Under the pieces are notes generated by a model that was not told the DNA's origin, made no database searches, and worked only from the letters and a program-made list of their open reading frames with translations. A program made the translations under genes and the position numbers. This document shows, piece by piece, positions 17,025 through 57,787 of a stretch of 64,000 bases of DNA (the stretch's first letter is position 1; each line of letters begins with the position of its first letter). The DNA lies in sequence record NC_009760.1; one strand, written 5' to 3'.

Positions 17025-17052
17025 ACCATCCCCTCTCTCGGCTTATTACACC

Positions 17053-17082
17053 TAGTATAGACAAATGTAATACTCTTTATTC
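17053..17082 (-). promoter_or_regulatory. SigmaG/F-type promoter, copy a
   Basis: GAATA-N18-TATACTA with AGTATTACA in the spacer. Confidence 0.55.
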
Positions 17083-18219
17083 AAAGAATGTAACAGTATA
17101 TTTACCCGGTGTATATTTCGGCTCAATGTCTGTTACGGTATGTGAATGCGATACAAGTTTCTGTGTGATCTGTACCGTCATTGGTAACTTTAATTCATGT
17201 GCTAATTCTTTTGCACGTTTCACTGCCGCACCTTTTGTTTCGAATCCACCTTCTTGTAGTTCCATGTTTGTGTATTCAAACTCATTACGACTAAGCGGGA
17301 TACGTGTACCATAAGAATAAATCTCATAGTAAGTCTTCCACTTTCTTGTGCCTTCTGTTGGATAATCCCACGATGTACATAGCTTCGTTTCCTCTGCCGG
17401 CATCGCTGTATTAATCGCACAAATGCGACCCATATCCACATCTTCTAAGTCTGCCGCTACACGAGCAGCGTGATTACGACTTAACGCTTCTACCTGTATC
17501 TTATTATCCTTTCTAGAGCCAATTAAGATACTTGGTAAAGGTTTGTTATTCGGTTCTTCTTTCTTAGCACCTAGTGTTCTCTTCCCAACCGGTACTCCGC
17601 TTTTTGTTTTTGCTACTGGCTTCTTCTTCGTTTTTGGTAATGGTTTCTTTGTTGGTGTAGCCAATTGACTCGCTCCTTTCAGGTTATCGTAAATATCTTG
17701 GTCATCTAGTCCTAACTTAGACTGTGTAAATGCTCTTGTTGGATTGTAATGATCCCATTCATGAAACAGTAATTGCAACTGACGACGGCTCTCTTGTTCT
17801 TTTCGTTTTTCCGCCTGTGGACGCTTCCACTGTTTCGGTTTCTTATTATCATATGTTAACTGTGCTGACGTCATTTTTATCGGTTCTTGACCTGCACGAA
17901 CCTTATCTAAGCGTGCTAAAAATATCTGCGTATGCACAAGCGGGCCAGCTTTCAATAATTTAATCTGATGTGCCAGTGCCGCATGAAGTTTTTTAAATCC
18001 TTTTCCGTCCGATGTCATAAACGAATGACCGCTTACCCAATGTCTAATATGTGTAATTGCAGTACGCTCCCACGCAAGAGTTTCTTCTTGGCGGTTTATC
18101 TTCACTTGATGATTGATGGCAAATTGATGCTGATTATATCTCTTACCATCTGTTGTAATAAATACTTGTCTTCCTTTCGCATCTATTTCAGATTCGAGAC
18201 GGTCAAATAAGATTGCCAT
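17077..18219 (-). CDS. Hypothetical basic protein
   Basis: 380 aa, Lys-rich centre, internal repeat GRQVFITTDGKR / GHSFMTSDGKG. Confidence 0.6.
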   Translation of the reverse strand: MAILFDRLESEIDAKGRQVFITTDGKRYNQHQFAINHQVKINRQEETLAWERTAITHIRHWVSGHSFMTSDGKGFKKLHAALAHQIKLLKAGPLVHTQIFLARLDKVRAGQEPIKMTSAQLTYDNKKPKQWKRPQAEKRKEQESRRQLQLLFHEWDHYNPTRAFTQSKLGLDDQDIYDNLKGASQLATPTKKPLPKTKKKPVAKTKSGVPVGKRTLGAKKEEPNNKPLPSILIGSRKDNKIQVEALSRNHAARVAADLEDVDMGRICAINTAMPAEETKLCTSWDYPTEGTRKWKTYYEIYSYGTRIPLSRNEFEYTNMELQEGGFETKGAAVKRAKELAHELKLPMTVQITQKLVSHSHTVTDIEPKYTPGKYTVTFFE

Positions 18220-18679
18220 TTTTAATTCGCTCCCTCACATTCATAATCATGATGCCGAGGCGATTCTTACCTTTGCCGGTTACACTTTGACCCCAGTATC
18301 TATCTCTATCGCTATGATGAATCAGTTCCTTATCACCAGTGCTTAATAATAATGTTCGTAGCCATTCATGTTGCTTGAACTTATGTATTAGTCCGACAAA
18401 CATGACATGCTCTTTCATGACATCCCAATCCTCATGAATAGGATAATCCGTACGCTGACCTAATCGTCTTGCTTCAAAAGGATTGTTTGTCGCTAGAATC
18501 TCCTCTACCGGTTCCAAATCAATAAACTTCTGCGCATGATAATAATGTTCTAACGTCGGATATTCTGTGCCAGCAATGACAACAGGGTGTTTACTCATAC
18601 AACTAAACTCCGAGTAGTTATCTGACCCGGAGTAAAATCGAATGGCGTTACTTTTTATATTTGCTTTCAACGTGTTCAA
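18203..18679 (-). CDS. NADAR (YbiA-like) family protein
   Basis: YPTLEHYYHAQKF, ARRLGQR, DWD, KFKQH, LLSTGDKEL, DRYWG, GKNRLG. Confidence 0.9.
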   Translation of the reverse strand: MNTLKANIKSNAIRFYSGSDNYSEFSCMSKHPVVIAGTEYPTLEHYYHAQKFIDLEPVEEILATNNPFEARRLGQRTDYPIHEDWDVMKEHVMFVGLIHKFKQHEWLRTLLLSTGDKELIHHSDRDRYWGQSVTGKGKNRLGIMIMNVRERIKNGNLI

Positions 18680-18971
18680 CCTCCTTCGCTATCTTCAAGA
18701 AATTACGACGAGACACGAGAACACGATACTCTGTCTCTACAAGCTGTTTATCTAACGTCACATATACCATGACCATATCATCTTGTAAGTGACTATTGTT
18801 GTGATACCAAAACGATGCCGTATAAAGAGACGGATCGCTGTCGATAAACTTATAGCCTAATTCGATTCGCTTACCAATCATTTTATTAAAGGTTTCTTTT
18901 CGTTTCCTCTTCTCTGTATTCTGAGCATCTAATATATCCTTTATAGACATATCTCTTACTTGCTTGTTCAT
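18648..18971 (-). CDS. Hypothetical protein
   Basis: Coupled to the primase stop. Confidence 0.55.
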   Translation of the reverse strand: MNKQVRDMSIKDILDAQNTEKRKRKETFNKMIGKRIELGYKFIDSDPSLYTASFWYHNNSHLQDDMVMVYVTLDKQLVETEYRVLVSRRNFLKIAKEVEHVESKYKK

Positions 18972-20242
18972 AGACTCACTCCTAACCGTTTCTCAACCAT
19001 ACTTTTAAATACTACTTTCTCCGATGGATTCTGTATACTCTCAAGTATTGGTAACAGTTCATCTAAGGCTTCCATCTGTGCGTCCTGCATCTTTCTGTCG
19101 AAGTCAGATAATGTTTGTTCTGCTACGACTTGCAACGCTGGTTTTGCATTTCCTTTGATGAAGTTTAGAATCGACGCTTCGTCTTGCTTTAATTTATTCA
19201 TGACCTCTGCCGGATCCATACCAGGAGATACAACAATTTTGACACGGAATCCAAACTCAAGTAAATCTTCAATAGATTCCATCATTGCATCAAAGCCAGC
19301 AGAATCTCCATCATACCAAAAGACAAGATTGCTTGTGATTCGTTTTAGCTTTTCCATTTGTTCACGAGTAAATGCAGTACCGCATGTTGCAATACTATTT
19401 TCTAAGCCCGCTTGGTGGGCGATAATCACATCTGTATATCCTTCGAATACCATTGCATACCCTCTTGAACGAATCGCCTTACGAGCGTGTGTAAGACCAT
19501 AGAGATAATGTCTCTTCTCATAAGCCTCTGACGTATAATCGTTTAGGTACTTTGGCTGTTCATCCTTTAATGTACGATAAGCCATTGCAATTGTTTTAGA
19601 AGTCTTCAGATTGAATCCCTCCTCGACTAAACCAAATACCAATCGACCGGCAACCTTCTGACCAAATAACGGATTACTATTATCGTCCTCGCTTATGTAT
19701 CCCATGCGGAACTTCTTAATAGACTGCTTCGTAATTCCTCGGCTATACACATATTCCATGACTGCTTTATTCGCTAATAAGTTTCTGCAATACTCATAGT
19801 TCAGCTTATGTGTTTTCTTCTTCGCTTGCTCTAACTTATAGTTTACATTCGCTTTCGGCGGTGTAATTCCCGCACGCTCCATTAAAATCATACATGCTTC
19901 CGGGAAAGATACACGTTCCATATTCATAACGAACCCAATGACATTCGGGCCGCCATCCTCAATCTTATGTCCATCCGGAAGCGTTAGGATGTTGGGCTTT
20001 GTTTTCTTCTCATCCGCCCACTTACGTCCGGCACTACACTTCCTGCTAAAACAGAAATAAGACGGGTCTTCGTCCTTCTTCTCAAAGATGTGCAAGTTAC
20101 CATGCTCACCATCGTTATGAAACGGACACGTTGCCTTATTGCTGCTGTTAAATACTACTCCATATTCCTTTGCCACTTCACGTAAGTCATTTTCCTCTAA
20201 TATTTGACGAATATGATCGTCGGTTATCTTACCGATTTTCAT
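18968..20242 (-). CDS. dnaG: DnaG-type DNA primase
   Basis: CHC2 zinc finger CPFH..YFCF..C, PKYLN, TOPRIM VFEGYTD and YDGDSAG; start refined to MKIGK after AGGAGG. Confidence 0.92.
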   Translation of the reverse strand: MKIGKITDDHIRQILEENDLREVAKEYGVVFNSSNKATCPFHNDGEHGNLHIFEKKDEDPSYFCFSRKCSAGRKWADEKKTKPNILTLPDGHKIEDGGPNVIGFVMNMERVSFPEACMILMERAGITPPKANVNYKLEQAKKKTHKLNYEYCRNLLANKAVMEYVYSRGITKQSIKKFRMGYISEDDNSNPLFGQKVAGRLVFGLVEEGFNLKTSKTIAMAYRTLKDEQPKYLNDYTSEAYEKRHYLYGLTHARKAIRSRGYAMVFEGYTDVIIAHQAGLENSIATCGTAFTREQMEKLKRITSNLVFWYDGDSAGFDAMMESIEDLLEFGFRVKIVVSPGMDPAEVMNKLKQDEASILNFIKGNAKPALQVVAEQTLSDFDRKMQDAQMEALDELLPILESIQNPSEKVVFKSMVEKRLGVSL

Positions 20243-20265
20243 GTTGCTACCTCCTTTTACATAAC

Positions 20266-20283
20266 TGTGCGTGCGAACGCACA
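20266..20283. repeat. Conserved GCGA-loop hairpin, copy 1
   Basis: TGTGCGT-GCGA-ACGCACA upstream of the dnaG RBS. Confidence 0.75.
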
Positions 20284-20284
20284 T

Positions 20285-20316
20285 AAAAAAGACACCCTAC
20301 AATGAGAGTGTCTTTT
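20285..20316 (-). terminator. Intrinsic terminator after the lysin gene
   Basis: AAAAGACAC...GTGTCTTTTTT. Confidence 0.7.
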
Positions 20317-20320
20317 GCTT

Positions 20321-21427
20321 TTAGACGACCTTAACGAATTTCTCGCTTGCCGTGATATAGAATACAGCACCTTTTGAGTTCTGTACTTTATATTGCGGTG
20401 AGCCGTCTACATCTACTTGCCCGATGATTGTGAAGCCTTGACCTTTCAAGACAACACCGGACACTTTTGATTTGTCCCAAGTTGGTTGAGAGTAGAAGTT
20501 TAATTGGTCTACGATAGACTCAACACGCTTTCCTACATACCATGCTTGAGTTCCTACTACCTCAACGAACGTATCGCTCGCTGTGATGTAGAATGTTGCA
20601 CCTGCGGAGTTTTGTACCTTATACTGGAACGCATCTCCGACTTGCAGTTTCTCTACGATCTTAGGGAAGACTTGATCTTTTTCAATCGTACCCGCCACAT
20701 CTGCATCAGCCCAAGAAGGTCTGTTGTAGAATCGTAAAGAGTTTGCTTTACATTTCAATTGTTTCCCTGAGTAGTCGCCACCTAAAGAAGTAACATTGTC
20801 ATTATTGACAGGTGGAGGAGCGATTTGATTCGTTTTACCTCCGCTAATGTACCACTCTAAAGTTTTGTCACCCATTAATTTATTACGGTCAACTTTCCCT
20901 ACACCATTCATCCATCCGCCTGTTTCACCATCAGCATATTGCCAGATGTCACATTTGTACTTCGGTTCAGGGCCACCGTAACGTGGAATCCATAAGAAGT
21001 CAGCCTTCACTTTGTTTAATCCATACTTCTCATACATGTGATGAGATACGTAGAATCCAACCATCCAGCCTTTCGACTTACAGCGGTCAATGAATGCTTG
21101 AGATGCAGCAGCGATATTATCAGGGCCACATGATTTCAGCGTATCATCTTCCGTATCCAGTACAAGGAACTTTGCATTCGGGCTTACACGTTTCATGAAG
21201 TCGTCAGCCTCTACAATCGCATCTGCAACAGAGACAAAGCATCCGTAAGCATATGCGGCATGTGGTACGCCACGAGCTTCTAATTCACGTACAAAGCTAT
21301 CATACAAACGATCCTTTAAGTTAGAACCATATTGCACACGGCAAATTGCTAGTCCTAATTGTGGTGCTAGAACGTTCCAATTAATATTGTCGTTCCATTT
21401 CGAAATGTCGATTACTTCTCTACCCAT
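20321..21427 (-). CDS. GH25 muramidase (lysin) with two C-terminal SH3-like wall-binding repeats
   Basis: VIDISKWN, VLDTED, LWIPRYG, DIWQY, VDRN; repeats LRFYNRPSW..YKVQNSAG / LNFYSQPTW..YKVQNSKG. Confidence 0.88.
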   Translation of the reverse strand: MGREVIDISKWNDNINWNVLAPQLGLAICRVQYGSNLKDRLYDSFVRELEARGVPHAAYAYGCFVSVADAIVEADDFMKRVSPNAKFLVLDTEDDTLKSCGPDNIAAASQAFIDRCKSKGWMVGFYVSHHMYEKYGLNKVKADFLWIPRYGGPEPKYKCDIWQYADGETGGWMNGVGKVDRNKLMGDKTLEWYISGGKTNQIAPPPVNNDNVTSLGGDYSGKQLKCKANSLRFYNRPSWADADVAGTIEKDQVFPKIVEKLQVGDAFQYKVQNSAGATFYITASDTFVEVVGTQAWYVGKRVESIVDQLNFYSQPTWDKSKVSGVVLKGQGFTIIGQVDVDGSPQYKVQNSKGAVFYITASEKFVKVV

Positions 21428-21467
21428 ACTATCAGCTCCCTTGTGGGAGATAGAGGTTGGTTACCTC

Positions 21468-21803
21468 TTATAGTTCGTCAACTGACTTCAAGTCACCATA
21501 CGATAGAAATATGCGAAACTCAAATGATAGAGGCGCATAATCTTTTCCGACAACTCGTAAAACATAGTCAGTAACTTCATTATACATGTTCTCTTCGTGT
21601 CCTGCATTAATAAAGAATGTATTTGCTCCGCCACGCTGATGATTAACTCGAATCGCTTTATGTCCGAACTCACCCTCATACGCTTTGATTAACTTACGAT
21701 TGATTTCCTCTACTAACGCCTCTTTGTCGTATCCTGCGTGTACGACAATATTGAAAGCGCCGATTTGCACTTCATTTGCTCCTATCGGTTGTGGTTTTGC
21801 CAT
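21468..21803 (-). CDS. Hypothetical protein
   Basis: Start refined to MAKPQP. Confidence 0.5.
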   Translation of the reverse strand: MAKPQPIGANEVQIGAFNIVVHAGYDKEALVEEINRKLIKAYEGEFGHKAIRVNHQRGGANTFFINAGHEENMYNEVTDYVLRVVGKDYAPLSFEFRIFLSYGDLKSVDEL

Positions 21804-21972
21804 TGTGTTTGGCTCCCTTCTCTTTAATGTCTTTTTGTATTTCTGATACCAACACTGCACAATCATCACAATACCCTGTGTTGTGTAGAGACTCACTTGC
21901 TGGAATCTCCGTTTTACAACGTGTGCAATTTGTCACTACGTTTTCGAAATAACGTTTATCTCTTTTCATCAT
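21772..21972 (-). CDS. Small CxxC protein
   Basis: CTRC...CDDC. Confidence 0.5.
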   Translation of the reverse strand: MMKRDKRYFENVVTNCTRCKTEIPASESLHNTGYCDDCAVLVSEIQKDIKEKGAKHNGKTTTDRSK

Positions 21973-22382
21973 TATCCACCATTTACTACTTTCTTCGGTT
22001 TTACCCAGCTACACTTGTCACATACGAATCCATACTTTGGTGTTCCCGGAATACGATCCATCCAAAGTTCTCCTCCGCAATGACATAACTGGTCATCATT
22101 CATTTCATGGTACTTTAACGTATCGACCTTCGCTTCGATGTAGTTCGCTAAAGTATTTACTTCTTTACATTCCGGACATTCAATCAATTGCTCCATGTCC
22201 GTTTCTTCTTTAATACGTTTCTCTGTTGATTCATGTAATGCGTGGTCTTTATTAATTTCGATAATGCCGTTGTGGAAGATTACTTCCGTCATCTCTTTAT
22301 TTTGTCTGACTGCATACGGCTCACCGTTCTTTAATACAACATGCATCTCATGTGCTTGCGCACACGCTGGACATCTAAACAT
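21972..22382 (-). CDS. Multi-zinc-ribbon protein
   Basis: CPAC, CPEC, CHC, CDKC; GGAGG RBS. Confidence 0.6.
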   Translation of the reverse strand: MFRCPACAQAHEMHVVLKNGEPYAVRQNKEMTEVIFHNGIIEINKDHALHESTEKRIKEETDMEQLIECPECKEVNTLANYIEAKVDTLKYHEMNDDQLCHCGGELWMDRIPGTPKYGFVCDKCSWVKPKKVVNGG

Positions 22383-22393
22383 AATCTAACCTC

Positions 22394-22825
22394 CTAAATA
22401 TTTGAGTGCCACCCTAGTTTACCATCGACGATACCAAATATCTTTTCATGTGTATCTTCATACTGCTTTGAAAAGAACTGCGGGTGGGTTGGTATCTTCT
22501 CTCCCGGATGATTCGGGTCATCTTGCATTGAACCCTCTATGTACGGTACGGGTTTTAATTCTTTACTTGGCGGTTCGGATTCCTGCACTTCGTAACCCGG
22601 CCCATACCAATAGCGTAAGCAAAGCGGTGTACCATCTTGCGTTACATGTAAGTAATCACAAGGCATGTGGTGGGGATCAGGATGTTCGCATATTGCTGTC
22701 CTGTCATTTCTAGCTCCCCAACCTATGAAGCGTTCCTCAAAATGGTCACATTTGCTATCTGCTGGCGTAGGTGTTCGATACCCACGCTGTCGGTTTGTTG
22801 TGCGACCGATTTTAACTTTCGCCAT
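22394..22825 (-). CDS. Hypothetical protein
   Basis: Start refined to MAKVKIG after AAAGGAGAG. Confidence 0.5.
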   Translation of the reverse strand: MAKVKIGRTTNRQRGYRTPTPADSKCDHFEERFIGWGARNDRTAICEHPDPHHMPCDYLHVTQDGTPLCLRYWYGPGYEVQESEPPSKELKPVPYIEGSMQDDPNHPGEKIPTHPQFFSKQYEDTHEKIFGIVDGKLGWHSNI

Positions 22826-22904
22826 CGGAACTCTCCTTTCTTGATAAGACTCACATAGTAATCTTATCAAGAAAAGAAGCCGCCGACTAGGGCGACTGTC
22901 CTTT

Positions 22905-23615
22905 TTATACTGCTTCTTGTTCTTCCTCTTCTTCGTCCTCGTCCCAATCAAAGTCATCGTCGTCACCGACATGCTCTCTGATAACCGTTTTACCTGCAAC
23001 AATCTGACTGATTAATGTTTTGTCAGCCGTCATCGCTAGGTGCGGTTGGTGAGTAACCATGATAATCTGACGGTTAAATGTTTTCGAGATGAACGCTAAG
23101 AACTCACCTAGCTTCACCACATATTCTTCTGATACGTGTTTACCCGGTTCATCTAAGATGATAGGGCCTTGTATCTTCGGTTCGTTGTATACAACCATCA
23201 CCGCAACTTGCAATGCAATCGCTACGATGTCATTGATACCACCACCACGAGAATCTTGTGGTTCATTCTCAATCGGCTCACCATTTTCACCAACTGAACA
23301 TACGAGGAATCGTGCGGCAGGTTTCCCGCCTGATTCCGTCATCTCAATTTTGAATGTGAAATCATGACCGAATATATGTTGTAAGGCACGAGTAACAACC
23401 TTCTCCATACGCTTACGACCAGCTTCACGGGCTGAGTCTGCCGTCTTCACAAGTAGTGCAGAGATTTGTTCCAGCTTCATACGTTCCTGTACTACGCCTT
23501 CAATCTTTGCTTCTAGGTCTTTCTTTTGGTCAGCAAGGATATTGCGCTCTGCTACACGTTTGTTAAAGTCATCTTGCATTCCTACTACTTTATGTGTAAG
23601 TACGCTTAAACGCAT
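22905..23615 (-). CDS. SbcC/Rad50 C-terminal half (signature, Walker B, H-loop)
   Basis: Coiled coil followed by SRGGG, IILDEPGKHVS, IMVTHQ. Confidence 0.85.
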   Translation of the reverse strand: MRLSVLTHKVVGMQDDFNKRVAERNILADQKKDLEAKIEGVVQERMKLEQISALLVKTADSAREAGRKRMEKVVTRALQHIFGHDFTFKIEMTESGGKPAARFLVCSVGENGEPIENEPQDSRGGGINDIVAIALQVAVMVVYNEPKIQGPIILDEPGKHVSEEYVVKLGEFLAFISKTFNRQIIMVTHQPHLAMTADKTLISQIVAGKTVIREHVGDDDDFDWDEDEEEEEQEAV

Positions 23616-24331: not shown

Positions 24332-24339
24332 GATGACTC

Positions 24340-24639
24340 CTACTCTTCAAATTCCATATCGTCATCATCGTCTGCTACTTCTTCACCCGGTAAATATTGA
24401 CGAGCGTCTTCCATTACCTCTGTTAAGTTCTTTTCTTTTTCAGCGATAACAGTAGCTAAGTCCTTCGGATCGTAGCCCATGTCTTTAATTTTCTTGGCAG
24501 CTTCCTTACGACGTTTAGATGCTTCCTCTTTACGAGTTTCTAAGCGCACCTTATCACTCTTCGCTTGCTCAAATTCGTTCTTTAACATTTTTAATTGGCG
24601 GTCAAAGTTTGTAGTCATTTGTATTTCCTCCCTATGCAA
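24340..24639 (-). CDS. Small coiled-coil protein (possible missing SbcC coil segment)
   Basis: Heptad-rich; start overlaps the stop of the SbcD-SbcC(N) fusion. Confidence 0.55.
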   Translation of the reverse strand: MHREEIQMTTNFDRQLKMLKNEFEQAKSDKVRLETRKEEASKRRKEAAKKIKDMGYDPKDLATVIAEKEKNLTEVMEDARQYLPGEEVADDDDDMEFEE

Positions 24640-28583: not shown

Positions 28584-28599
28584 AAAACCTCCTTGTTTC

Positions 28600-28628
28600 T
28601 AGTATGTTACATTTTGTAATGCTTATAC
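28600..28628 (-). promoter_or_regulatory. SigmaG/F-type promoter, copy b
   Basis: GTATA-N17-CATACTA containing AGCATTAC-AAAAT-GTAACA. Confidence 0.6.
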
Positions 28629-30383: not shown

Positions 30384-30385
30384 TA

Positions 30386-33265: not shown

Positions 33266-33294
33266 TATTGTTACCATCTGTAACGCTTTTATGC
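33266..33294 (-). promoter_or_regulatory. SigmaF/G-type promoter, copy c
   Basis: GCATA-N14-GGTAACAATA containing AGCGTTAC-AGATG-GTAACA. Confidence 0.6.
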
Positions 33295-33311
33295 AGAGAA
33301 ACAAGAGGCTT

Positions 33312-35285
33312 TTACACCTCTTGAATTAACTCATCCGGCAACTCTTCCATAAAGCGTGAAGGTGTTTGCCAGTTATACGTACGGTTATAATCCATACGAC
33401 GCTCTGCATGAGTGAAATACAATATCTCCTGCGCACGAGTGATACCTACATACGCTAGGCGACGTTCTTCTTCTAATTGAACTGTATCAGATAGACTACG
33501 TGAATGCGGGAATAATCCCTCTTCCATACCAATCATAAATACGACTGGATACTCAAGTCCTTTCGAAGTATGAAGCGTCATTAATTGTACTTTGTCTTGA
33601 TTGACTACTTTATCTTGCTGAGATTGCAGTGCGATTTGGTCAAGGAAGTCTTGTAGATGTGGGTCTTTATTCTCTTGTTCATAACCCTTCGCAATCTTCG
33701 TTAACTCCTTGATATTATCAATACGGCGGAAGTCTTCTTCCTTACCAGTTTCCTGCAACTTCTCAATGTACTGCGTATATTTAAAGATAAGTTCTAACAT
33801 GTCTGTAATCGGTTGGTCAGATACGCTCTTACCTGCTTCATACAATGCATTTAAACGAGCGACTGTATCTGTTAATCCTACGAATGCAGCTTTCGCTTTC
33901 GCTGTCTTCGGATTGAAATACTCCACCACTTCATAGATAGACTTGTTCTTTTCGTTTGCCTTATCTTTGATTTGTTTAATCGTTGTTTTACCAACGCCCG
34001 CTTGCATGTTCAAGATACGGTCACATGCAATATCGTTGTCAGGATTAACAGCTAACTGCATCCATGACATGATGTCCTTGATTTCCTTACGTTCATAGAA
34101 GGAGAATCCGGAAACCATATTGTACGGAATGTTATGGCGGATAAACTGATCCTCAAGGAGACGAGATTGAACGTTCGTGCGATACAGAAGTGCAATGTCT
34201 TCATACTTGTATCCATCGAATGTACATAGGTTCTGAATCTCCTGTGCAATGAAGCGTGCTTCTTGTTCATCGTCCGGCGCTTCATACTTACGTATCTTCT
34301 CACCCATTCCTTTATCCGTGAAGCAAGTTTTATTCATCTGCTTCGTATTATGTTTCATGATGGCGTTACCTGCGGTTACAATCGTATTGGTAGAACGATA
34401 ATTCTGCTCTAGCTTCACGACCTTCGTACCCGGATAATCTTTTTGGAAGTTGAGTATCTTCTCAATGTTCGCTCCACGCCACCCGTATATGCCTTGATAA
34501 TCATCGCCAACGACAAATATGTTATTCTTATCGCCGACAATGTTTTTAATCATACGGTACTGACATTCATTCGTATCTTGATACTCATCACACATAATAT
34601 ACTTGTATCGTCGCTGGAACTTCCTGCGTACTTCCGTATTGCTTTCCAGTAAGATAACCATCTTCATGATTAAGTCATCAAAGTCTACGGCATTGTTACG
34701 TGCCATTCTGTCTTGATAACGCTCATAGATTCTCGCAAATGACTTATCTTGCGGTTCCATTTGCTTACGGAAATCTTTCGGCAGTATCATATCATTCTTC
34801 AAGTTACTAATACGGGACTGCGTTGCATATACGTTCTGCTTTGAGTCATCCATATTGTTACTCTTTAGTAACTCTTTAATGACTTTGTTTGTATCCTCTG
34901 AATCGAAGATCGTCCAGTTCTTTTTCAGACCTGCTTCACTATAATATTGATGTAACCAACGTACAGCTAGAGAGTGGAATGTACCAATCATAATCTTCTT
35001 GGCTCTCGCTTCTCCTACCTCATTGCCGATACGTTCCTTCATTTCTGTTGCTGCTTTATTTGTAAACGTCACGGTTAATATACGGCGTGGGTCAATACCA
35101 TTTTCTAAAATATACCCCACACGCTTTTGAAGAACCCTTGTTTTTCCACTTCCTGCTCCGGCGATAACTAAACTAGGGTTCTTTACTGTTTTAACAACCG
35201 CTTCCTTCTGAGCTGGATTCAGACCATCTAATAACTTACGTATCCGTTTCCGCTTTCTCTTTCTTTCTTCATCCATTACTACCAC
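33312..35285 (-). CDS. pcrA: PcrA/UvrD SF1 helicase
   Basis: LNPAQ, AGAGSGKT, TFTNKAA, DEYQD, VGDDYQ.IY.WRGA, LEQNYRS, LMTLHTSKGLEY, ERRLAYVGITRA. Confidence 0.95.
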   Translation of the reverse strand: MVVMDEERKRKRKRIRKLLDGLNPAQKEAVVKTVKNPSLVIAGAGSGKTRVLQKRVGYILENGIDPRRILTVTFTNKAATEMKERIGNEVGEARAKKIMIGTFHSLAVRWLHQYYSEAGLKKNWTIFDSEDTNKVIKELLKSNNMDDSKQNVYATQSRISNLKNDMILPKDFRKQMEPQDKSFARIYERYQDRMARNNAVDFDDLIMKMVILLESNTEVRRKFQRRYKYIMCDEYQDTNECQYRMIKNIVGDKNNIFVVGDDYQGIYGWRGANIEKILNFQKDYPGTKVVKLEQNYRSTNTIVTAGNAIMKHNTKQMNKTCFTDKGMGEKIRKYEAPDDEQEARFIAQEIQNLCTFDGYKYEDIALLYRTNVQSRLLEDQFIRHNIPYNMVSGFSFYERKEIKDIMSWMQLAVNPDNDIACDRILNMQAGVGKTTIKQIKDKANEKNKSIYEVVEYFNPKTAKAKAAFVGLTDTVARLNALYEAGKSVSDQPITDMLELIFKYTQYIEKLQETGKEEDFRRIDNIKELTKIAKGYEQENKDPHLQDFLDQIALQSQQDKVVNQDKVQLMTLHTSKGLEYPVVFMIGMEEGLFPHSRSLSDTVQLEEERRLAYVGITRAQEILYFTHAERRMDYNRTYNWQTPSRFMEELPDELIQEV

Positions 35286-39969: not shown

Positions 39970-40077
39970 ATTGTGAACCTCCTAATTGTTCATTAAGTAT
40001 AGTATTTCCATTTGTAATAATCATATACACGAAAGAAACGCCCTCGTACCTTTATCGCACGAGGGCATCTGCCTTTA

Positions 40078-40427: not shown

Positions 40428-40455
40428 ATTTTATCATCCATAAAAGTAATGTCAA
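40428..40455 (-). promoter_or_regulatory. SigmaA promoter for HU/ssb
   Basis: TTGACA-N16-TAAAAT with an extended -10 TG. Confidence 0.65.
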
Positions 40456-40696: not shown

Positions 40697-40712
40697 GGGC
40701 GTGCGAACGCCC
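40697..40712. repeat. Conserved GCGA-loop hairpin, copy 2
   Basis: GGGCGT-GCGA-ACGCCC. Confidence 0.75.
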
Positions 40713-48175: not shown

Positions 48176-48201
48176 CGTAAAACCTCCTTAAACATGCAAA
48201 A

Positions 48202-48221
48202 AAGCCCGTGCGAGCGGGCTT
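48202..48221. repeat. Conserved GCGA-loop hairpin, copy 3 (also a minus-strand terminator)
   Basis: AAGCCCGT-GCGA-GCGGGCTT; U tract on the minus strand. Confidence 0.7.
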
Positions 48222-48225
48222 CATC

Positions 48226-49003: not shown

Positions 49004-49015
49004 TTCCTATTCCTC

Positions 49016-49462: not shown

Positions 49463-49481
49463 ATCACATGCCCTCCCTATA

Positions 49482-51163: not shown

Positions 51164-51389
51164 TTTGACTTCCTCCTCGATTTTGGTTTAATACTTTTTG
51201 ATATTCACTTGCCATCTCGTCACTGCCATAGAAAGGAGTTTGGCACTCCTCTCCCGTGACGACTTCCTCTTTACTGCCACGTATCAATCTTATTAAATCT
51301 TTTACTATGTCTATCGTCCACTCGAATACGAGTATCAAGACGACAGATAAGACGAACGCTACAATTATTGCAATCACGTCTGCTATCAA
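51144..51389 (-). CDS. Small membrane protein
   Basis: N-terminal TM helix. Confidence 0.5.
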   Translation of the reverse strand: MIADVIAIIVAFVLSVVLILVFEWTIDIVKDLIRLIRGSKEEVVTGEECQTPFYGSDEMASEYQKVLNQNRGGSQNDSIKK

Positions 51390-51401
51390 GAGGAAAACCT
51401 C

Positions 51402-52358
51402 CTATGATTCAAGCGACGACTCCGTGTTCTTCATTAACTTCATTGCATCAGCTAATTGATTCGATAGAACCACCAGCTTCTTATCAAGTATATCTTCATA
51501 CTCGGATGCTCTGTCTTGTAAATCCACCACACGTTTTGCATATCGCTGAACAGTTTTGACACTGGCTGTGCCTTTGCCAAGTAAGTCTGCAAAGTCGGCA
51601 AGCAATTGATTTGCTTCCTCTGACATTTGTGACTCAACCTGACGTTGTACCATATCACGTTGATCGCTCGTATCAATCATTGGAATAACTTCCATAATCG
51701 ACTTCGACGTTCCCGTATGGTAATCCTCTAAGTCATCAATCACGCCACGTAGGTTCTCTAACGTGTTACGTTGATTACGAGGAATGAATGTAGCCCTACC
51801 ATTCGGCATGATGCTTACATGGTTCATGTCATTTACGACACGACGTACAAGATTGTTTACAGTATCCTTAGTATGGAACTGCATCCATTCATTATACAAA
51901 GCTTGTGTATCAGACAGCAATACATCATACGGGTATTCTGTTAAGAAACTTGAATCCCAACTAATGTCCATTGTGCCTGTTTTCTTTTGAAGAATGAATT
52001 TCCCCACTGTAGCATAGCCCAGTTGCTCATTCTTCTTATCCACTAGCTCTCGTACCAAGTGACGAATCACCATATTGCCATCGGACTTCACTTCACGAAC
52101 CATCAGTCGTGCTTCGCTCGGTTTTCCTCCGAAGTCTATTGTCACCGTTGACGTTGCTTTTGCAGTCGCCCGGCGGTAAGCATCATGAGCCTTAATTTCC
52201 TGAGGCATGAACTTCGGGTCTAAGCTATTTCTAGCAAAGATTTGCCCTAAGTCATCCTTATGGATACGAAGGTCTGAAATGGTATGGAACTCTAAGAACC
52301 CTAATAATTCGGAAGTTTGCAAGTCTGCATTACTTCTTACTGCTGCTACGTTTGCCAT
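51402..52358 (-). CDS. DUF6744-like protein
   Basis: LLGFLEFHTI, DAYRRAT and C-terminal coiled coil; family call from memory. Confidence 0.45.
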   Translation of the reverse strand: MANVAAVRSNADLQTSELLGFLEFHTISDLRIHKDDLGQIFARNSLDPKFMPQEIKAHDAYRRATAKATSTVTIDFGGKPSEARLMVREVKSDGNMVIRHLVRELVDKKNEQLGYATVGKFILQKKTGTMDISWDSSFLTEYPYDVLLSDTQALYNEWMQFHTKDTVNNLVRRVVNDMNHVSIMPNGRATFIPRNQRNTLENLRGVIDDLEDYHTGTSKSIMEVIPMIDTSDQRDMVQRQVESQMSEEANQLLADFADLLGKGTASVKTVQRYAKRVVDLQDRASEYEDILDKKLVVLSNQLADAMKLMKNTESSLES

Positions 52359-52381
52359 AACTGTTTCCCCTCTCCTAGTAG

Positions 52382-52759
52382 TTACTTAATTTCAAGAGAC
52401 AACTTCATGTAGGTATCAAAGCCCATCTCGATGTCAAAGAATGCACCGTATTCAGTTGTCGTGTAGCTAACCGTTTCTGTATTGAATAGCAACGGTAATA
52501 CATGGTTTAAGTTTGTAGATGGGTCTGTATCTAACCCTTCACGCTTCATAATCTCTTCTGCCTTTGGCGTTACATATCCATAATGTAATTCCACATTATC
52601 TACTTCAGCAGAATAGACCAAATCCACTTTTACAATACCTTTCGTGCGAACGAAAGTAGAAGCTAGAGCTTCAATCATCCCTTGTAAATCATTATGTGTT
52701 AAGCTGATTTGTACCTTGTCAGCTTTAATCAGAGTGCCAAGTCTGTTTGTATATGCCAT
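52382..52759 (-). CDS. Hypothetical protein
   Basis: Start refined to MAYTNR after GGAGG. Confidence 0.5.
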   Translation of the reverse strand: MAYTNRLGTLIKADKVQISLTHNDLQGMIEALASTFVRTKGIVKVDLVYSAEVDNVELHYGYVTPKAEEIMKREGLDTDPSTNLNHVLPLLFNTETVSYTTTEYGAFFDIEMGFDTYMKLSLEIK

Positions 52760-52770
52760 GCTATAACCTC

Positions 52771-53307
52771 CTACCATAGTACGTAATCGTCTTTTAAATG
52801 AACGAGTTTCTTCGATAATAAATGACCGATTACATTTGTTCCGCCTACAAAGAATCTCACTACTTTCCATTCATCATTCTCAACAACAATGGAGTAGATA
52901 TAAGCGTCTTGTCTATCCAAGATATAATTTGTTTCATCTCTTGTTAAGATGTAATTGTTACTATTTAATCCCTTGAATGCTTTTCTCGGAATTAAATCTG
53001 CTTCGTGCATAAAGTCCTGTATATTATCCACTGTCGGTGCAGATGATTTCACCGGTGGTTCAGGCTTCTTGTATTCAATTATTTCCGGTACAACTTCGTA
53101 CGCTTTTAAATATGATATTGGAAGGTTCTCACTATGTGCGACAGACTTCATGGCTTCATGTACTGACCTCGCCTGTATCTTCTTTAGCAAGATTTCCGTA
53201 TCAAACGGTTCATTTGCTTCTGTTGTATTACCTTTGTCATCGACATCGTAAATACGAGCGTCTGCATACTTTTCATCCACCATGACTAGATATGTCTTCA
53301 CAATCAT
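52771..53307 (-). CDS. Hypothetical protein
   Basis: AAGGAGG RBS; directly downstream of promoter copy d. Confidence 0.55.
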   Translation of the reverse strand: MIVKTYLVMVDEKYADARIYDVDDKGNTTEANEPFDTEILLKKIQARSVHEAMKSVAHSENLPISYLKAYEVVPEIIEYKKPEPPVKSSAPTVDNIQDFMHEADLIPRKAFKGLNSNNYILTRDETNYILDRQDAYIYSIVVENDEWKVVRFFVGGTNVIGHLLSKKLVHLKDDYVLW

Positions 53308-53323
53308 CCCTCCTTGTTACTTA

Positions 53324-53353
53324 TAGTGTTACCAAATGTAATGCTAATTATGC
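53324..53353 (-). promoter_or_regulatory. SigmaF/G-type promoter, copy d
   Basis: GCATA-N15-GGTAACACTA containing AGCATTAC-ATTTG-GTAACA. Confidence 0.65.
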
Positions 53354-53788
53354 AGCAAACTCTACATAAAATTCATTCATGTCTACCTTCGCTGCACCTA
53401 CAAGATACCCAATCACACCATTCGTATTAATCGTGTCATCAGATACAATCCAGTGACCGTGTATATTTTCTTTCACGGCATAGAATCTCAATGTACGACC
53501 TGCTTCTACAGATAACACCTGTACATGGTCGAGTGTGTGAAGATACTGTGCATTACCAGGAACACGGTCAGTCTTACGAAGAAGATTCGCGGCTATAATG
53601 AAATCTTCAAATGACATGTCGGTACGATCATCGTTACCCTCTTCCATCATTGCGTTGATAGTGTTTAACATCCTATCTTTGACAGCATCATCTATACCCA
53701 TTTCACCATCGAAATACTCGTCCTCATAATCAAAATCCATATCCTCATTAACTTGCGGATTCATCTTCATCACCTTCATCGTCTCCAC
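53348..53788 (-). CDS. Acidic hypothetical protein
   Basis: Operon context. Confidence 0.5.
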   Translation of the reverse strand: METMKVMKMNPQVNEDMDFDYEDEYFDGEMGIDDAVKDRMLNTINAMMEEGNDDRTDMSFEDFIIAANLLRKTDRVPGNAQYLHTLDHVQVLSVEAGRTLRFYAVKENIHGHWIVSDDTINTNGVIGYLVGAAKVDMNEFYVEFAA

Positions 53789-53996
53789 AAATTACTAAAT
53801 GGAAGTATTCTTCTGTAACCAGTTTATCCATTGTTGTTTCATGCGTACATGTGTAACATTCAACGTCTGTCGGTTGTAGTTCTTCTGTTGGGCTGACATT
53901 AATTGTCTTACCGCTTCCATCACATACAACAACGGCTGTCATATTTTTGTGGTACTTAAATATTCCACCGCCACATTCCGGGCATACTTTTGTCAT
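53748..53996 (-). CDS. Small zinc-ribbon protein
   Basis: CPECG...CYTC; GAGGAGG RBS. Confidence 0.55.
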   Translation of the reverse strand: MTKVCPECGGGIFKYHKNMTAVVVCDGSGKTINVSPTEELQPTDVECYTCTHETTMDKLVTEEYFHLVICGDDEGDEDESAS

Positions 53997-54074
53997 ACAA
54001 ATCTAACCTCCTCTGGTTCTTACCACTGGTTATCTATATGAACTAGGGCATTACCCTAGAGAATCTACGTAATA

Positions 54075-54090
54075 GTGCGTGCGAACGCAC
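54075..54090. repeat. Conserved GCGA-loop hairpin, copy 4
   Basis: GTGCGT-GCGA-ACGCAC. Confidence 0.75.
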
Positions 54091-54099
54091 AAAAGATGT

Positions 54100-54507
54100 T
54101 TAAAACATGTGTCTTCCTTTACGTTTTGCTTCCTTCATCGCCTTACGTCGTGCTTCACGATTTTGATATAGTTCAACCGGGTACTTCATTGATTCGTTTA
54201 TCTTTTCTATAAACTGTTCATCTAAACTTTGTGCAACTCTTGGAGCAGCGATAATTTCAATTTGCTCCTGTATATCCTGCAATACGATATGGTTACTTAT
54301 CTTCGCTAATTCCGCCATTGCCTCAGGACTTAATTTACCACTTTGAGAACCAACAACGATGTATTTCTTTTCTTTTTCATTTATTTCTGATATTCCTTCA
54401 TAAAACGCCTCTAATGCATCAGGATCCATTCGGCCACTCGCATCATCAACGATGATTAATTGCTCTCTTTCCACGGTTCTCCCTCGCTTCTTTACGGCGT
54501 TGCGCAC
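54100..54507 (-). CDS. Hypothetical protein
   Basis: Probable GTG start near 54474. Confidence 0.5.
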   Translation of the reverse strand: MRNAVKKRGRTVEREQLIIVDDASGRMDPDALEAFYEGISEINEKEKKYIVVGSQSGKLSPEAMAELAKISNHIVLQDIQEQIEIIAAPRVAQSLDEQFIEKINESMKYPVELYQNREARRKAMKEAKRKGRHMF

Positions 54508-54736
54508 GGTTCTTAAAATTCATCGCATCAATTTGACGTTGCTCTGCTAAGACCATCGCTTCTTGCCATCCATGTAAATGTACATCACTCGGATCAACCG
54601 CAAGCATTTTGCCTCGTCCTCCTGTTGCACCAAACATTTCAACAACAACACCTTTTGGTATGTTTAGATAAGAATAGGCAGCGGAGTGTGCCGGATTAAA
54701 CCCGACAACACCCGTGCCTATAGAACGCCTCATCAC
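54446..54736 (-). CDS. Hypothetical protein
   Basis: Shares an NR..RRK basic ending with its downstream neighbour. Confidence 0.45.
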   Translation of the reverse strand: MMRRSIGTGVVGFNPAHSAAYSYLNIPKGVVVEMFGATGGRGKMLAVDPSDVHLHGWQEAMVLAEQRQIDAMNFKNRAQRRKEARENRGKRAINHR

Positions 54737-55236
54737 TTCGCCACCAGATGCGCCATATCTTTTGCATCTGTCGCTTTGATTTCGATTTCTTCTGTGCGGT
54801 CAAACTCTTCATCCGTTAATGCCATGAACTGAATCATAGCAGGTTTGAATTGTCGCCACGCACCACGTTCATGACACCATGCGACAACTTGACCATTCTT
54901 CCAATTGTGAGGTTCAATTAAACGTTTTGATATACCGCCTTTTGCATCTTTGTATTCAATCGCTAACTTCTTACGTTGCGTTGCACTCATTACAATATAA
55001 GCGATAAACATCGACGGGTCATCTGTTTGTAGGTCGGAAGTATTTGCCACTTTTGTAGACTCTCCCGGCTTCTCGTATGACTTCTCGATGTTGGTGTTGA
55101 TGAACGCTTTATACATGTTCGCCATCACACCGTCTGGATCGTTTTCCTTTTCTACTTTGTATGCTTCCACCATAAGTTTCTGAATACGACTAAGCTGTCT
55201 ATATTCAACTCCGTTATCTGCCACTAATCTCATCAA
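54733..55236 (-). CDS. WYL-domain protein
   Basis: LAIEYKDAKGGISKRLIEPH, VVAWCHERGAWRQFK. Confidence 0.75.
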   Translation of the reverse strand: MMRLVADNGVEYRQLSRIQKLMVEAYKVEKENDPDGVMANMYKAFINTNIEKSYEKPGESTKVANTSDLQTDDPSMFIAYIVMSATQRKKLAIEYKDAKGGISKRLIEPHNWKNGQVVAWCHERGAWRQFKPAMIQFMALTDEEFDRTEEIEIKATDAKDMAHLVAK

Positions 55237-55684
55237 ACTTCGCCTCCTGTAATGTATCTTGGAACTCCATTAAATAATACGATGCAATTTGTGCTGGCAA
55301 GAAGCCCTCGTCCGGGCGTTCTGTCACATACTTGCTATATGATTTTAGTAAGAAACGTAACTGCATTTCATTACAGTCCTTCCAATTTCTCGGCCAGTTT
55401 TGTTTTGGATGAACATTCATATCCATTAGGTACTCATCTAGGTAACCATGACTTAATGCTTCTTTAATTACATCTTCATGATATGCTAGTGTATCTTTAC
55501 CCGGCTTCTTGCCGTAGTTTGGTAAATCACGCACATCGAATGTCTCCATTTCAGGCTCATCTACAACCTGATAGTTGTATTTCATCTTCTCTTCTAATTC
55601 ATCATGCATATAAGAATGAAAGATGGTAATGCCTCCATAGACGGTTAACACTTCTGCTGGTACACGTTTAGATATATACGGCAT
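55214..55684 (-). CDS. Hypothetical protein
   Basis: Coupled ORF. Confidence 0.5.
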   Translation of the reverse strand: MPYISKRVPAEVLTVYGGITIFHSYMHDELEEKMKYNYQVVDEPEMETFDVRDLPNYGKKPGKDTLAYHEDVIKEALSHGYLDEYLMDMNVHPKQNWPRNWKDCNEMQLRFLLKSYSKYVTERPDEGFLPAQIASYYLMEFQDTLQEAKFDEISGR

Positions 55685-56031
55685 TATTCAACACTCATTT
55701 CCGGATATAGTTTCGTTGCTGACTCAAAGATGGCATTATTACGTGGATCAGAATCATTCATGAGTTTATCAGCAGCATGTTTCGCAATCGCAACCATCTG
55801 CTCTTTTGTATACTCACCGTTTTGGAATACGTTCTCTACTTCCGATAAAATGTCCATGTAGTCATAACGTACATGTCCATCGAACGGGAAAACTTCTACA
55901 CTTTGCACTTCTGCATTAGGCCCCCATGCACCTTCGATACCTGCTTGCACGCCTTTACAAAGACTAGAATCCGAAATCATATCTACTTTATCTAATGTCA
56001 TTGCCACAAGAAATGTCTTCTTCATTACCAC
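55684..56031 (-). CDS. Hypothetical protein
   Basis: Coupled ORF. Confidence 0.5.
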   Translation of the reverse strand: MVMKKTFLVAMTLDKVDMISDSSLCKGVQAGIEGAWGPNAEVQSVEVFPFDGHVRYDYMDILSEVENVFQNGEYTKEQMVAIAKHAADKLMNDSDPRNNAIFESATKLYPEMSVE

Positions 56032-56492
56032 TTCATCCCCTCTTTTGGCGTATATTCTTTTATATTATGCATCGCCGTTTTTGCCTTCTCCATCCCTCCG
56101 CTTACACGTTCATGAAGATATTCATTATGTTGATTATTGATATGACTTGTAATGGTTGCTATATTTTCGTTCGCCATACTCACGGCATCAATCAATCCAT
56201 TAATCGCTCGCTCCATATGCGCAAGTGACATACGAGTATTCCGTACTCGTTCAACTTCTATTTCATCATTGAGTGCAACATTCGCTTCACGAGCTAGTTG
56301 CGAAAGTTCCCACTCACCCATTGCTTGAATGACTTTATTGGATACGATAGGTCGATAGTTCTTTTGTATATCTGTATTTTGAAAGGCTTTCTGCAACTGA
56401 TACAATTCTTCTTCTGTTGCATTTAGCATCGTAATAAATAACGTAGGTCTGTCCGATAAACTTACAGGACTTGTTTGATTAATTTCTTCCAC
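56025..56492 (-). CDS. Hypothetical coiled-coil protein
   Basis: Coupled ORF. Confidence 0.5.
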   Translation of the reverse strand: MEEINQTSPVSLSDRPTLFITMLNATEEELYQLQKAFQNTDIQKNYRPIVSNKVIQAMGEWELSQLAREANVALNDEIEVERVRNTRMSLAHMERAINGLIDAVSMANENIATITSHINNQHNEYLHERVSGGMEKAKTAMHNIKEYTPKEGMKW

Positions 56493-57226
56493 TCTTCGTC
56501 ATCCTCCAATACCTTGACTACTTCAAAGTTCGTTGCTTCCATGCGTGCCTTCATCCAGTTTAATGTTAAGATGATATTCTTCATTGCATCTTCTAAGGAT
56601 TGCACTTGGTTATCTACAGCTTCGATACCTACCCTATCATTACCACGAACTGCTTCATTACGAAGATTTGTTAACCTATCGAAATGACGTTGAAACTGGT
56701 CAGATGAACTCATCTCTAGATTTACATCCACATACATATGGTCGGGTTTATACACATCCCAACGTATTCCTGTTACCCACGGTATCATTGTTCTAATACT
56801 ATGCGGGTTGCCATACCCGTTTAGTGTATACCCATAAGTCACTTGTGTGAGTTCATCAAATATCTTCCACTGCGTTGACTCATCCAGTGCCAATGCAGAT
56901 GGTGGTAATGCAAGGTCATCCTTGATTGTTAACTCTAAATCAACACAATACGTTTCACTCTTACTAGGGTCGATTTCGAAGTTATAAAAGCAATGCATAA
57001 GGTCTTCCTCTTCGAATAGACTGCCCGAACCTGCATCTACCTGTAATGGTCGTACATACTGCATATCTGTAAAGTTTACAATTGCTTCGGGGAATGCAAT
57101 GAGTAATGCGCCATTTTGATTATTCTCATAAATGAATCCCCTTGATCCACACTCGACACCAATATTGTTTTCACCATTGGGCCAAAAGTCCTGACTTGCT
57201 TCTACCCAGTTCTTTAAGTGAATCAT
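56462..57226 (-). CDS. Hypothetical protein
   Basis: 254 aa, operon context. Confidence 0.55.
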   Translation of the reverse strand: MIHLKNWVEASQDFWPNGENNIGVECGSRGFIYENNQNGALLIAFPEAIVNFTDMQYVRPLQVDAGSGSLFEEEDLMHCFYNFEIDPSKSETYCVDLELTIKDDLALPPSALALDESTQWKIFDELTQVTYGYTLNGYGNPHSIRTMIPWVTGIRWDVYKPDHMYVDVNLEMSSSDQFQRHFDRLTNLRNEAVRGNDRVGIEAVDNQVQSLEDAMKNIILTLNWMKARMEATNFEVVKVLEDDEEWKKLIKQVL

Positions 57227-57409
57227 TTAGCACGCCACCCTTCCTCGCTGTGCTGTACTGCTGATAATTGCAGTTGGTTCCTTCGCTAACAACTTTTGGT
57301 CTGCCTCACCTGTTGTTTTAGCGTATATAAAATCTGAATGTGGATAACCATCCACGTAATACTTAATGTAATACTCAAACATGACTACTAACCTCCTTTT
57401 GTCGTACAA
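57227..57409 (-). CDS. Small hypothetical protein (true start likely MFEYY)
   Basis: AAAGGAGG RBS precedes the internal Met. Confidence 0.45.
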   Translation of the reverse strand: MYDKRRLVVMFEYYIKYYVDGYPHSDFIYAKTTGEADQKLLAKEPTAIISSTAQRGRVAC

Positions 57410-57412
57410 AAA

Positions 57413-57430
57413 GAGCCGTGCGAACGGCTC
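57413..57430. repeat. Conserved GCGA-loop hairpin, copy 5 (also a minus-strand terminator)
   Basis: GAGCCGT-GCGA-ACGGCTC; U tract on the minus strand. Confidence 0.75.
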
Positions 57431-57452
57431 CCTGATTTTACATGACTAAGCG

Positions 57453-57731
57453 TTATCCGATTGCTGGATAATTATCTCTTACGAACTCTGAAATGAAGTA
57501 TGGTGTTTCTTCTTTTGTATCGTTAGCAAGATAGAATCCCATTTCTTCTTCACCACTATCTGGATTATAGATGTACTGCACGGTTGTTTGACAGATGTCA
57601 TATGCCTTTTCATCCGCTACATCTAAGAACTGATAGAACAGTGTCTCATCGTCCGCTAATTGAATCTTTAATGCCAATGTATTTGTAATGCTAGATGTTG
57701 CCGTGTTATCCCCTTGTAGTACAGCCGCCAT
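57453..57731 (-). CDS. Acidic hypothetical protein
   Basis: AAAGGAG RBS; downstream of promoter copy e. Confidence 0.55.
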   Translation of the reverse strand: MAAVLQGDNTATSSITNTLALKIQLADDETLFYQFLDVADEKAYDICQTTVQYIYNPDSGEEEMGFYLANDTKEETPYFISEFVRDNYPAIG

Positions 57732-57758
57732 ACGACCACTCCTTTGCTATGTTACTTT

Positions 57759-57787
57759 TAGTATTACCATTTGAAATACTCTTATGC
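57759..57787 (-). promoter_or_regulatory. SigmaF/G-type promoter, copy e
   Basis: GCATA-N14-GGTAATACTA containing AGTATTTC-AAATG-GTAATA. Confidence 0.6.

Follow-up and report, generated by a model that had tools for sequence, protein, structure and literature searches.

The DNA analysed here is a stretch of 64,000 nucleotides (the window) that is 100% identical to bases 124001-188000 of Bacillus phage 0305phi8-36 (NC_009760.1 / EF583821.1; 218,948 bp), whose host is B. thuringiensis. The window represents the right arm of the phage genome, where nearly all genes lie on the minus strand and where most are concerned with replication, recombination or nucleotide metabolism, or have no assigned function. 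The remainder of the genome was read in pieces, as separate loci. Our subject is a short element that recurs in the gaps between these genes. It has eight copies in the phage and, as judged from sequence, is a real, non-random and conserved family of promoter-like sites. We also consider what might read these sites, and in particular gp193, a protein encoded elsewhere in the same genome.

A preliminary description of the window had reported five such sites (a to e) as a regulon. Their coordinates, minus-strand orientation and sequences were all found to be as described. Sites c, d and e also agree, as stated, at 21 positions of an ungapped 29-bp core, which runs from the spacer through the GTAA that follows the -10 element. 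The five sites were used to build an nhmmer model, which was iterated once over the whole phage. This gave a family of eight members with E <= 1e-4, six of them inside the window, and the next match is intragenic with an E-value of 1.5. The regulon of five was thus too small a set: site g, within the window, had been overlooked, and f and h lie outside it (Table 1). All eight sites are intergenic and on the coding strand, 16-30 nt ahead of a start codon, and they fall between 141 and 193 kb of the phage. Sites a to e occupy gaps of 46-66 bp between annotated minus-strand genes, with gp232, gp11, gp22, gp48 and gp59 respectively downstream, and the end of the -10 element is 16-30 nt from the start codon of these genes. 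A weak possible ninth member is included in Table 1. A sequence upstream of gp62 (at about 60841-60860) was not counted as a member, having only the -10 element and GTAAC, followed by a hairpin.

Table 1 Coordinates of the promoter-like sites and of other features. Positions are those of the window unless stated otherwise.
Feature	Position	Strand	Remarks
Site a	17053-17082	-	Upstream of gp232 (YdjM-family hydrolase); sigG-like GAATA-N18-TATACTA; GTAA 4 nt past the -10
Site b	28600-28628	-	Upstream of gp11; GTATA-N17-CATACTA; exact sigG consensus GNATA-N17-CAWAMTA
Site c	33266-33294	-	Upstream of gp22; GCATA-N14-GGTAACAATA; exact sigF consensus, 14-nt spacer
Site g	40000-40028	-	Upstream of gp32; exact sigF consensus, 14-nt spacer
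Site d	53324-53353	-	Upstream of gp48; GCATA-N15-GGTAACACTA; exact sigF consensus, 15-nt spacer
Site e	57759-57787	-	Upstream of gp59; GCATA-N14-GGTAATACTA; exact sigF consensus, 14-nt spacer
Site f	Beyond the right edge of the window		Upstream of gp68; one mismatch to sigF consensus, N14
Site h	Beyond the right edge of the window		Upstream of gp72; one mismatch to sigF consensus, N15
Weak possible ninth member	1253-1290	+	Upstream of gp208 (PadR-family regulator); GAATA-N15-GGATAGACTA-N3-GTAAG; nhmmer E only 4.5-9
Terminator-like hairpin and T-run	33302-33323	-	Immediately upstream of site c, following the helicase gene gp23
Terminator-like hairpin	40036-40070	-	Stem of 14 bp; immediately upstream of site g, following HU gene gp33
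sigA promoter of HU gene gp33	40428-40455	-	Near-consensus, TTGACA-16-TAAAAT with upstream TG
CGTTCGCACG hairpins in the window	~20267-20282, 40697-40712, 52640-52655, 54075-54090, 57414-57429	-	Variant at 48202-48221
CGTTCGCACG hairpins outside the window	189-212.5 kb of the phage, and terminal repeat	-	About 14 more copies
gp229	14916-15503	-	Thymidylate/cytidylate-kinase-like P-loop
gp230	15576-15950	-	Winged-helix regulator domain
gp232	16587-17024	-	YdjM family (3.5e-23)
gp46	51402-52358	-	DUF6744 (3e-49)
gp62	60079-60786	-	C-terminal 3D (MltA-like) domain behind a coiled coil
Two tRNA-like elements	58565-58668, 59122-59193	-	Reach the Rfam tRNA gathering score; agree with the tRNA-like notes of the record
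TCAATT[C/G]TGA[C/G]A motif	15532, 59279	-	
TCAATT[C/G]TGA[C/G]A motif	16088, 21334, 45352, 77220 of the phage	+	

The preliminary description likened the sites to promoters of the forespore sigma factors sigF and sigG, and this likeness is borne out. In B. subtilis the sigF consensus is GTATA at -35 and GGNAANAMTR at -10, and the sigG consensus is GNATA at -35 and CAWAMTA at -10 (PMC3416734, Table 4); the sigF elements are separated by 14-15 nt (PMC5942855). The patterns used for searching were GYATA-N14/15-GGNAANAMTR for sigF-type sites and GNATA-N17/18-CAWAMTA for sigG-type sites. The -35 element is GCATA in c, d and e and GTATA in f, g and h. The sigF-type -10 is exact in c, d, e and g and has one mismatch in f and h, with a spacer of 14 nt in c, e, f and g and of 15 nt in d and h. 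The two remaining sites have the sigG form, which is exact in b and has one mismatch in a (T for C at the first position of the -10). Over the whole phage there are four exact matches to the sigF consensus, against 0.17 expected by chance; in the window the pattern likewise has four exact matches, where chance would give about 0.7 for each spacer length even if one mismatch were tolerated.

By comparison, a scan for sigA-type promoters (TTGACA-N16-18-TATAAT, at least 9 of 12 positions matching) picked up none of the six window sites. Most of the sites carry the sequence ATTACA in the spacer, and the possibility that this is itself a sigA -35 was discarded by inspection: the hexamers that would then have to serve as the -10, 17 nt downstream, are poor.

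The sites are also placed as promoters would be. Strong terminator-like hairpins stop 7 nt 5' of the -35 in c and g, and f and h are each directly preceded by a hairpin and T-run belonging to a repeated family with a CGTTCGCACG core, which is described below. No terminator was found upstream of a, b, d or e. The succession of terminator, motif and ribosome-binding site looks like the start of a transcription unit. Genes downstream of family sites encode helicase partners, a recombinase, an SbcC-like nuclease, UDG and RecQ.

Read-through RNA would include the conserved block at a, b, d and e, given that these have no upstream terminator, and the block could then be an RNA element within a polycistronic mRNA, such as a processing site or a translational operator. 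We consider this very improbable. The sites have no common stable fold (z-scores of -1.5 to +1.4), Rfam gives no match, and the positions conserved are those of the -35-like and -10-like blocks on either side of a variable spacer, rather than paired columns.

Conservation in related genomes was used to see which parts of the element are kept. A search of a phage collection with gp22, gp48, gp99 and gp193 returned only 0305phi8-36 itself or very distant matches, and IMG/VR gave no relative, only 0305phi8-36 itself. Homologues of the gp23 helicase were, however, located through a large protein database on contigs of about 206-214 kb in Logan, JGI, ENA and NCBI assemblies, and the 0305phi8-36 lineage has many uncultivated relatives of this size. 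Eight of these genomes (L012, L013, L014, L015, L016, L019, L020 and L021) were compared through the 22-kb neighbourhood of the helicase gene. One of them, L015, is NZ_CP186007.1 from Paenibacillus sp. EC2-1. It was submitted as a complete plasmid, 206,502 bp long, suggesting that it lives as a plasmid-prophage.

The motif recurs in six uncultivated relatives (L012, L013, L014, L016, L019 and L021), whose helicases are 56-97% identical to that of the phage and whose GC content is 41-51%. It is found at orthologous positions, namely after the HU gene, after the helicase and before the gp11 homologue, and also after RecA. A site at the position of g, after the HU gene, is present in seven relatives, in a diverged form in L015. 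What is kept is the -35, the -10 (above all A-N-A-C-T-A) and the GTAA three or four bases past it. The spacer sequence varies freely and is unrelated in L016 and L021; in the sites after RecA it is formed by the descending arm of a terminator hairpin and its T-run. The form seen in site b, with its 2-nt shift, is retained in L012, L013 and L019. A fixed distance between two conserved blocks, with the sequence between them free to change, is the hallmark of two-part recognition of the sigma type, and the pattern fits this better than it does one contiguous polymerase site. It is worth adding that the HU gene gp33 itself has a near-consensus sigA promoter (Table 1), and that all relatives checked for this (L014, L015, L016, L020 and L021) have an equivalent promoter ahead of their HU gene.

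The same comparison bears on the preliminary suggestion that the sites share a palindromic operator, TTAC-N5-GTAA, bound by a dimeric repressor. This string is indeed present in b, c and d, and in e with one mismatch. Its arms are, however, not kept independently of the promoter elements in orthologous sites, and a shared operator is not supported. The GTAA arm coincides with positions 2-5 of the -10 element. Its sequence is GTGA in f and GAAA in g, and it is also broken at the positions of g and c in L013. The other arm, TTAC, is altered to TTTC in e and h. It is missing from the sites that follow RecA in L013, L014, L016, L019 and L021, and from the sites at the g position in L016 and L015, and many of the orthologous sites that have lost it keep the -35 and -10. 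As to whether operator and promoter are separate elements, the repeat block is shifted by 2 nt in b-type sites, and one arm is inseparable from the -10.

A clean inverted repeat of 5+5, its centre variable, is confined to the b-type sites, where three genomes keep it. In these sites the repeat has moved by 2 nt, while the -35 and the end of the -10 are still 24 nt apart. Seven of the eight sites have ATTACA, exactly or nearly so, at a constant distance from the -10, and it is placed likewise in L012, L013 and L019. Together these two features make a spacer-binding factor possible for a subset of the sites, although on present sequences it would not be the defining shared feature. They also speak for the proposal that host sigA polymerase reads the sites with the help of a phage activator bound to ATTACA, in the manner of the MotA appropriation of phage T4, or that a dimeric repressor on TTAC-N5-GTAA provides extra gating. 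The phage encodes several small DNA-binding proteins (gp208, PadR; gp230, winged helix-turn-helix; gp84, XRE; gp53, WYL; and gp69, Myb-like). Nevertheless, the -10 is poor as a sigA hexamer, no window site passes the sigma-70-type scan, and the loss of the TTAC arm from many orthologous sites and the damage to the GTAA arm described above tell against either version, as does the overlap of one arm with the -10. We regard this proposal as improbable.

A resemblance to the binding box of TnrA/GlnR (TGTNA-N7-TNACA, 17 bp with both half-sites) had also been remarked on. This holds for c, which has one mismatch, but d has two and e three. As a shared feature the box was rejected by inspection. Where a site has AATAC in place of AACA, the right half is lost.

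The close fit to the forespore consensus raises the alternative that the host's own forespore sigma factors read the sites, sigF reading c, d, e, f, g and h, and sigG reading a and b. In that case the phage operons would be active in the forespore of a sporulating host, and might serve, for instance, to bring a trapped genome or a plasmid-like prophage into the spore. Four sites match B. subtilis sigF at all 15 specified positions with the right spacing, and b is an exact match to sigG; Pfam scans of about 70 phage proteins revealed no close sigF or sigG homologue; the phage genome includes a gene for partition and others that are plasmid-like; and one relative is the 206.5-kb plasmid of a spore-former. 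However, sigF and sigG are inactive in vegetative cells, while the helicase partners, recombinase, SbcC-like nuclease, UDG and RecQ encoded downstream are needed in the vegetative lytic cycle, and the operons of c and g, lying behind strong terminators, would be silent in such cells. The sites are moreover far more uniform than host sigF promoters and share features beyond the sigF consensus (the GTAA past the -10 and the ATTACA in the spacer), and the Paenibacillus relative has not kept the motif even though its host has sigF and sigG. On balance we think it unlikely that the host factors read the sites. Slightly less likely again is the wider proposition that a lineage of phages or plasmid-prophages of about 210 kb in spore-forming Bacillales, with no sigF or sigG homologue of its own, ties part of its replication and recombination programme to host sigF and sigG and expresses it inside the developing spore.

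The phage does encode a protein of the sigma-70 family. The gene for gp193 (NC_009760.1, 113986-114849, plus strand; 287 amino acids) lies outside the window, adjoins RuvC, and is annotated in the record as hypothetical. The Pfam scans mentioned above found no sigma domain above threshold in any of the proteins, and for gp193 gave a weak match to Sigma70_r4_2. However, gp193 falls over its full length into PHROG 351, 'RNA polymerase sigma factor', with E = 1.3e-12. Among members of its family, TIGR02937 is matched in 14 of 15, Sigma70_r4_2 in 11 of 15 and Sigma70_r4 in 6 of 15. In tblastn searches it is 23-25% identical, over about 90% of its length, to genes annotated by PGAP as sigma-70 family on large Clostridium and Bacillus plasmids, and it also matches an annotated sigma factor of the jumbo phage vB_BauM_KLEB27-3. 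A plasmid of C. baratii str. Sullivan has homologues of both gp193 and gp99, the single-chain YonO-like RNA polymerase of the phage.

Structure prediction points the same way. The AlphaFold (AF2) model of a homologue 87% identical to gp193, whose mean predicted local distance difference test score is 77, shows a disordered linker between two helical domains. The top 50 fold matches in the PDB are all sigma-factor chains or RNA polymerase complexes that contain a sigma factor. The E-values of these matches are weak, since the relative position of the two domains is not fixed. In a search of a viral fold library the best named matches are phage sigma factors of the SigF, SigB/F/G and SigG types. 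When PDB sequences were searched with a profile of the gp193 family, only chance helix-turn-helix matches were returned. Taking the sequence families and the predicted fold together, we conclude that gp193 is a divergent sigma-70-family protein encoded by 0305phi8-36. The preliminary description had suggested looking in the genome for a gene of the sigF/sigG type: a phage sigma factor does exist, but outside the window, and it is not a close homologue of sigF or sigG. Hardies et al. (2007) reported no recognisable sigma factor in this phage (PMC2147016), and Iyer et al. (2021) listed it with a YonO-like polymerase and no sigma factor.

The operon that contains gp193, from gp179 onwards, is headed by a terminator and a good sigA-type promoter (TTGAAA-17-TATACT). 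Homologues of gp193 share contigs with the motif in L013 and L014. A far more distant element, plasmid pAD3 of B. velezensis (NZ_AP024502.1), retains the RuvC-sigma gene pair in synteny, with a sigma 23% identical to gp193; the motif was absent from the 40 kb of it that were searched.

The reading that we favour, to which we would give a little less than an even chance, is that the eight sites form a phage-specific promoter class read by host core RNA polymerase carrying gp193. The promoters would head replication, recombination and nucleotide-metabolism operons in the right arm. Their architecture would be two-part and sigma-70-like, with a -35 of G[C/T/A]ATA, a spacer of 14-15 nt and a 10-nt -10 of the GGNAANAMTR type, plus two variants of sigG-like geometry. 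Sites of such an architecture are most likely read by a bacterial core RNA polymerase with an alternative sigma factor of specificity similar to sigF/sigG. In the proposed scheme gp193 would first be made by the host sigA polymerase and would then redirect the host core enzyme to the eight promoters, where transcription would probably start within the conserved GTAA, 4-8 nt past the -10. That the sites fire, that they do so at these positions, and that gp193 rather than host sigF or sigG reads them is what we infer from the DNA.

Several considerations weigh against reading by gp193. No paper on the transcription of 0305phi8-36 was found in the literature, and both promoter activity and start sites are inferred. 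Since gp193 is very divergent, it would be something of a coincidence if its promoters agreed exactly with the host sigF consensus, and this favours the host forespore factors as readers. It falls below the curated Pfam and NCBIfam cut-offs and does not match the model of the sigB/F/G subfamily. Its gene is some 30-80 kb from the promoters, in the other arm and beside structural genes, so that it could equally be a late-gene sigma factor. Finally, the relatives are not uniform: L020 has no site in its 22-kb helicase neighbourhood, and in the Paenibacillus plasmid L015 only one diverged site was found in 42 kb, though a gp193 homologue (41% identity) is present.

A different class of repeated element has already been described in this phage, and has to be distinguished from the sites discussed here. 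Hardies et al. (2007) reported a 21-bp motif in 14 noncoding segments, and proposed that these are phage-specific promoters read by gp99 (PMC2147016). When all gaps of the right arm were read, a hairpin with the CGTTCGCACG core, followed by a T-rich tract and TGTA, was found in exactly 14 intergenic gaps. In all there are about 20 copies, every one on the minus strand, and the outer stem is variable and covaries around the fixed core; the family is absent from more distant relatives. This hairpin family is very probably the published class of 14 sites, and it looks equally like a set of terminators. It shares with the eight-site family a repeated intergenic motif in the right arm of the same phage, but with 14 intergenic copies against eight it is very probably a different element.

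The hairpins bear on whether gp99 might read the eight sites, in which case the CGTTCGCACG hairpins would be terminators rather than gp99 promoters. Their resemblance to a stem followed by a T-run would suit this, as would the location of the gp99 gene in the early region and the conservation of the sites through the start region (GTAA), as in the promoters of phage polymerases; the promoter of YonO is also still undefined (PMC5467207). Against it, a conserved -35 and -10 with a free spacer of fixed length is the signature of recognition by a sigma factor, and enzymes of the YonO type are without sigma-binding domains (PMC5467207; PMC7824862). In addition, Hardies et al. assigned gp99 to the 21-bp class, which we take to be the hairpin family. 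It therefore seems improbable that gp99 reads the eight sites, marginally more so than for sigA with an activator.

Comparison with known systems helps to place the proposed pairing of gp193 with the eight sites. Phage lytic programmes with their own sigma factors are known from SPO1, in which the phage sigma factors gp28 and gp33/34 read phage-specific middle and late promoter classes. A repeated, conserved two-part motif at the heads of operons together with a phage-encoded sigma factor is common to both phages, but the sequence of the motif is unrelated, and 0305phi8-36 additionally has its own YonO-like RNA polymerase. The forespore promoters of B. subtilis are matched exactly in -35, spacer length and -10 by c, d, e and g (sigF) and by b (sigG). 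They differ in that the phage sites front replication and recombination genes, are much more uniform, and have the extra blocks ATTACA and GTAA.

By analogy, the closest known system is that of phage Fah, a gamma-like phage of B. anthracis. According to the account in PMC4113786 of the work of Minakhin et al. (2005), its sigma-Fah, a relative of sigF, directs host polymerase to a late phage promoter; the same account describes sigma-Fah as a close sigF homologue under the control of SpoIIAB. Both are phages of the B. cereus group in which a promoter of the sigF type occurs together with a phage-encoded sigma factor. However, gp193 is highly divergent and was earlier unrecognised as a sigma factor, the eight sites lie in a non-structural region, and the link between gp193 and the sites is drawn here from sequence alone. 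What is new, with the genome paper of Thomas et al. (2007; PMC2171028) left aside, is a putative promoter class not reported before, and an unannotated sigma factor where the literature describes none.

Some further features of the window and its surroundings were noted. Sharper annotations were obtained for five genes in the window, and both of the tRNA-like elements lie in the 1.1-kb gap between gp60 and gp61 (Table 1). The motif TCAATT[C/G]TGA[C/G]A recurs in both arms of the phage, and in relatives, within 5' leaders and a short way ahead of ribosome-binding sites. It is partly palindromic, and one copy contains TGTCA-N4-TGACA. In the left arm, gaps between structural genes (for example upstream of gp141, gp146, gp147, gp162 and gp167) contain, immediately ahead of the ribosome-binding site, a GC-rich hairpin with a T-run and a TATA-like sequence after it.

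Phage 0305phi8-36 is the founder of a poorly understood lineage of jumbo phages. The promoter class and the cryptic sigma factor together would give a three-way model of its transcription, shared between host sigA, a phage sigma factor and the YonO-like polymerase of the phage. They also raise the question of whether a very divergent sigma factor has converged on, or has kept, a specificity like that of sigF, or whether the phage makes use of the sporulation sigma factors of its host. The uncultivated and plasmid-borne relatives supply comparative material for this that the authors of 2007 lacked.

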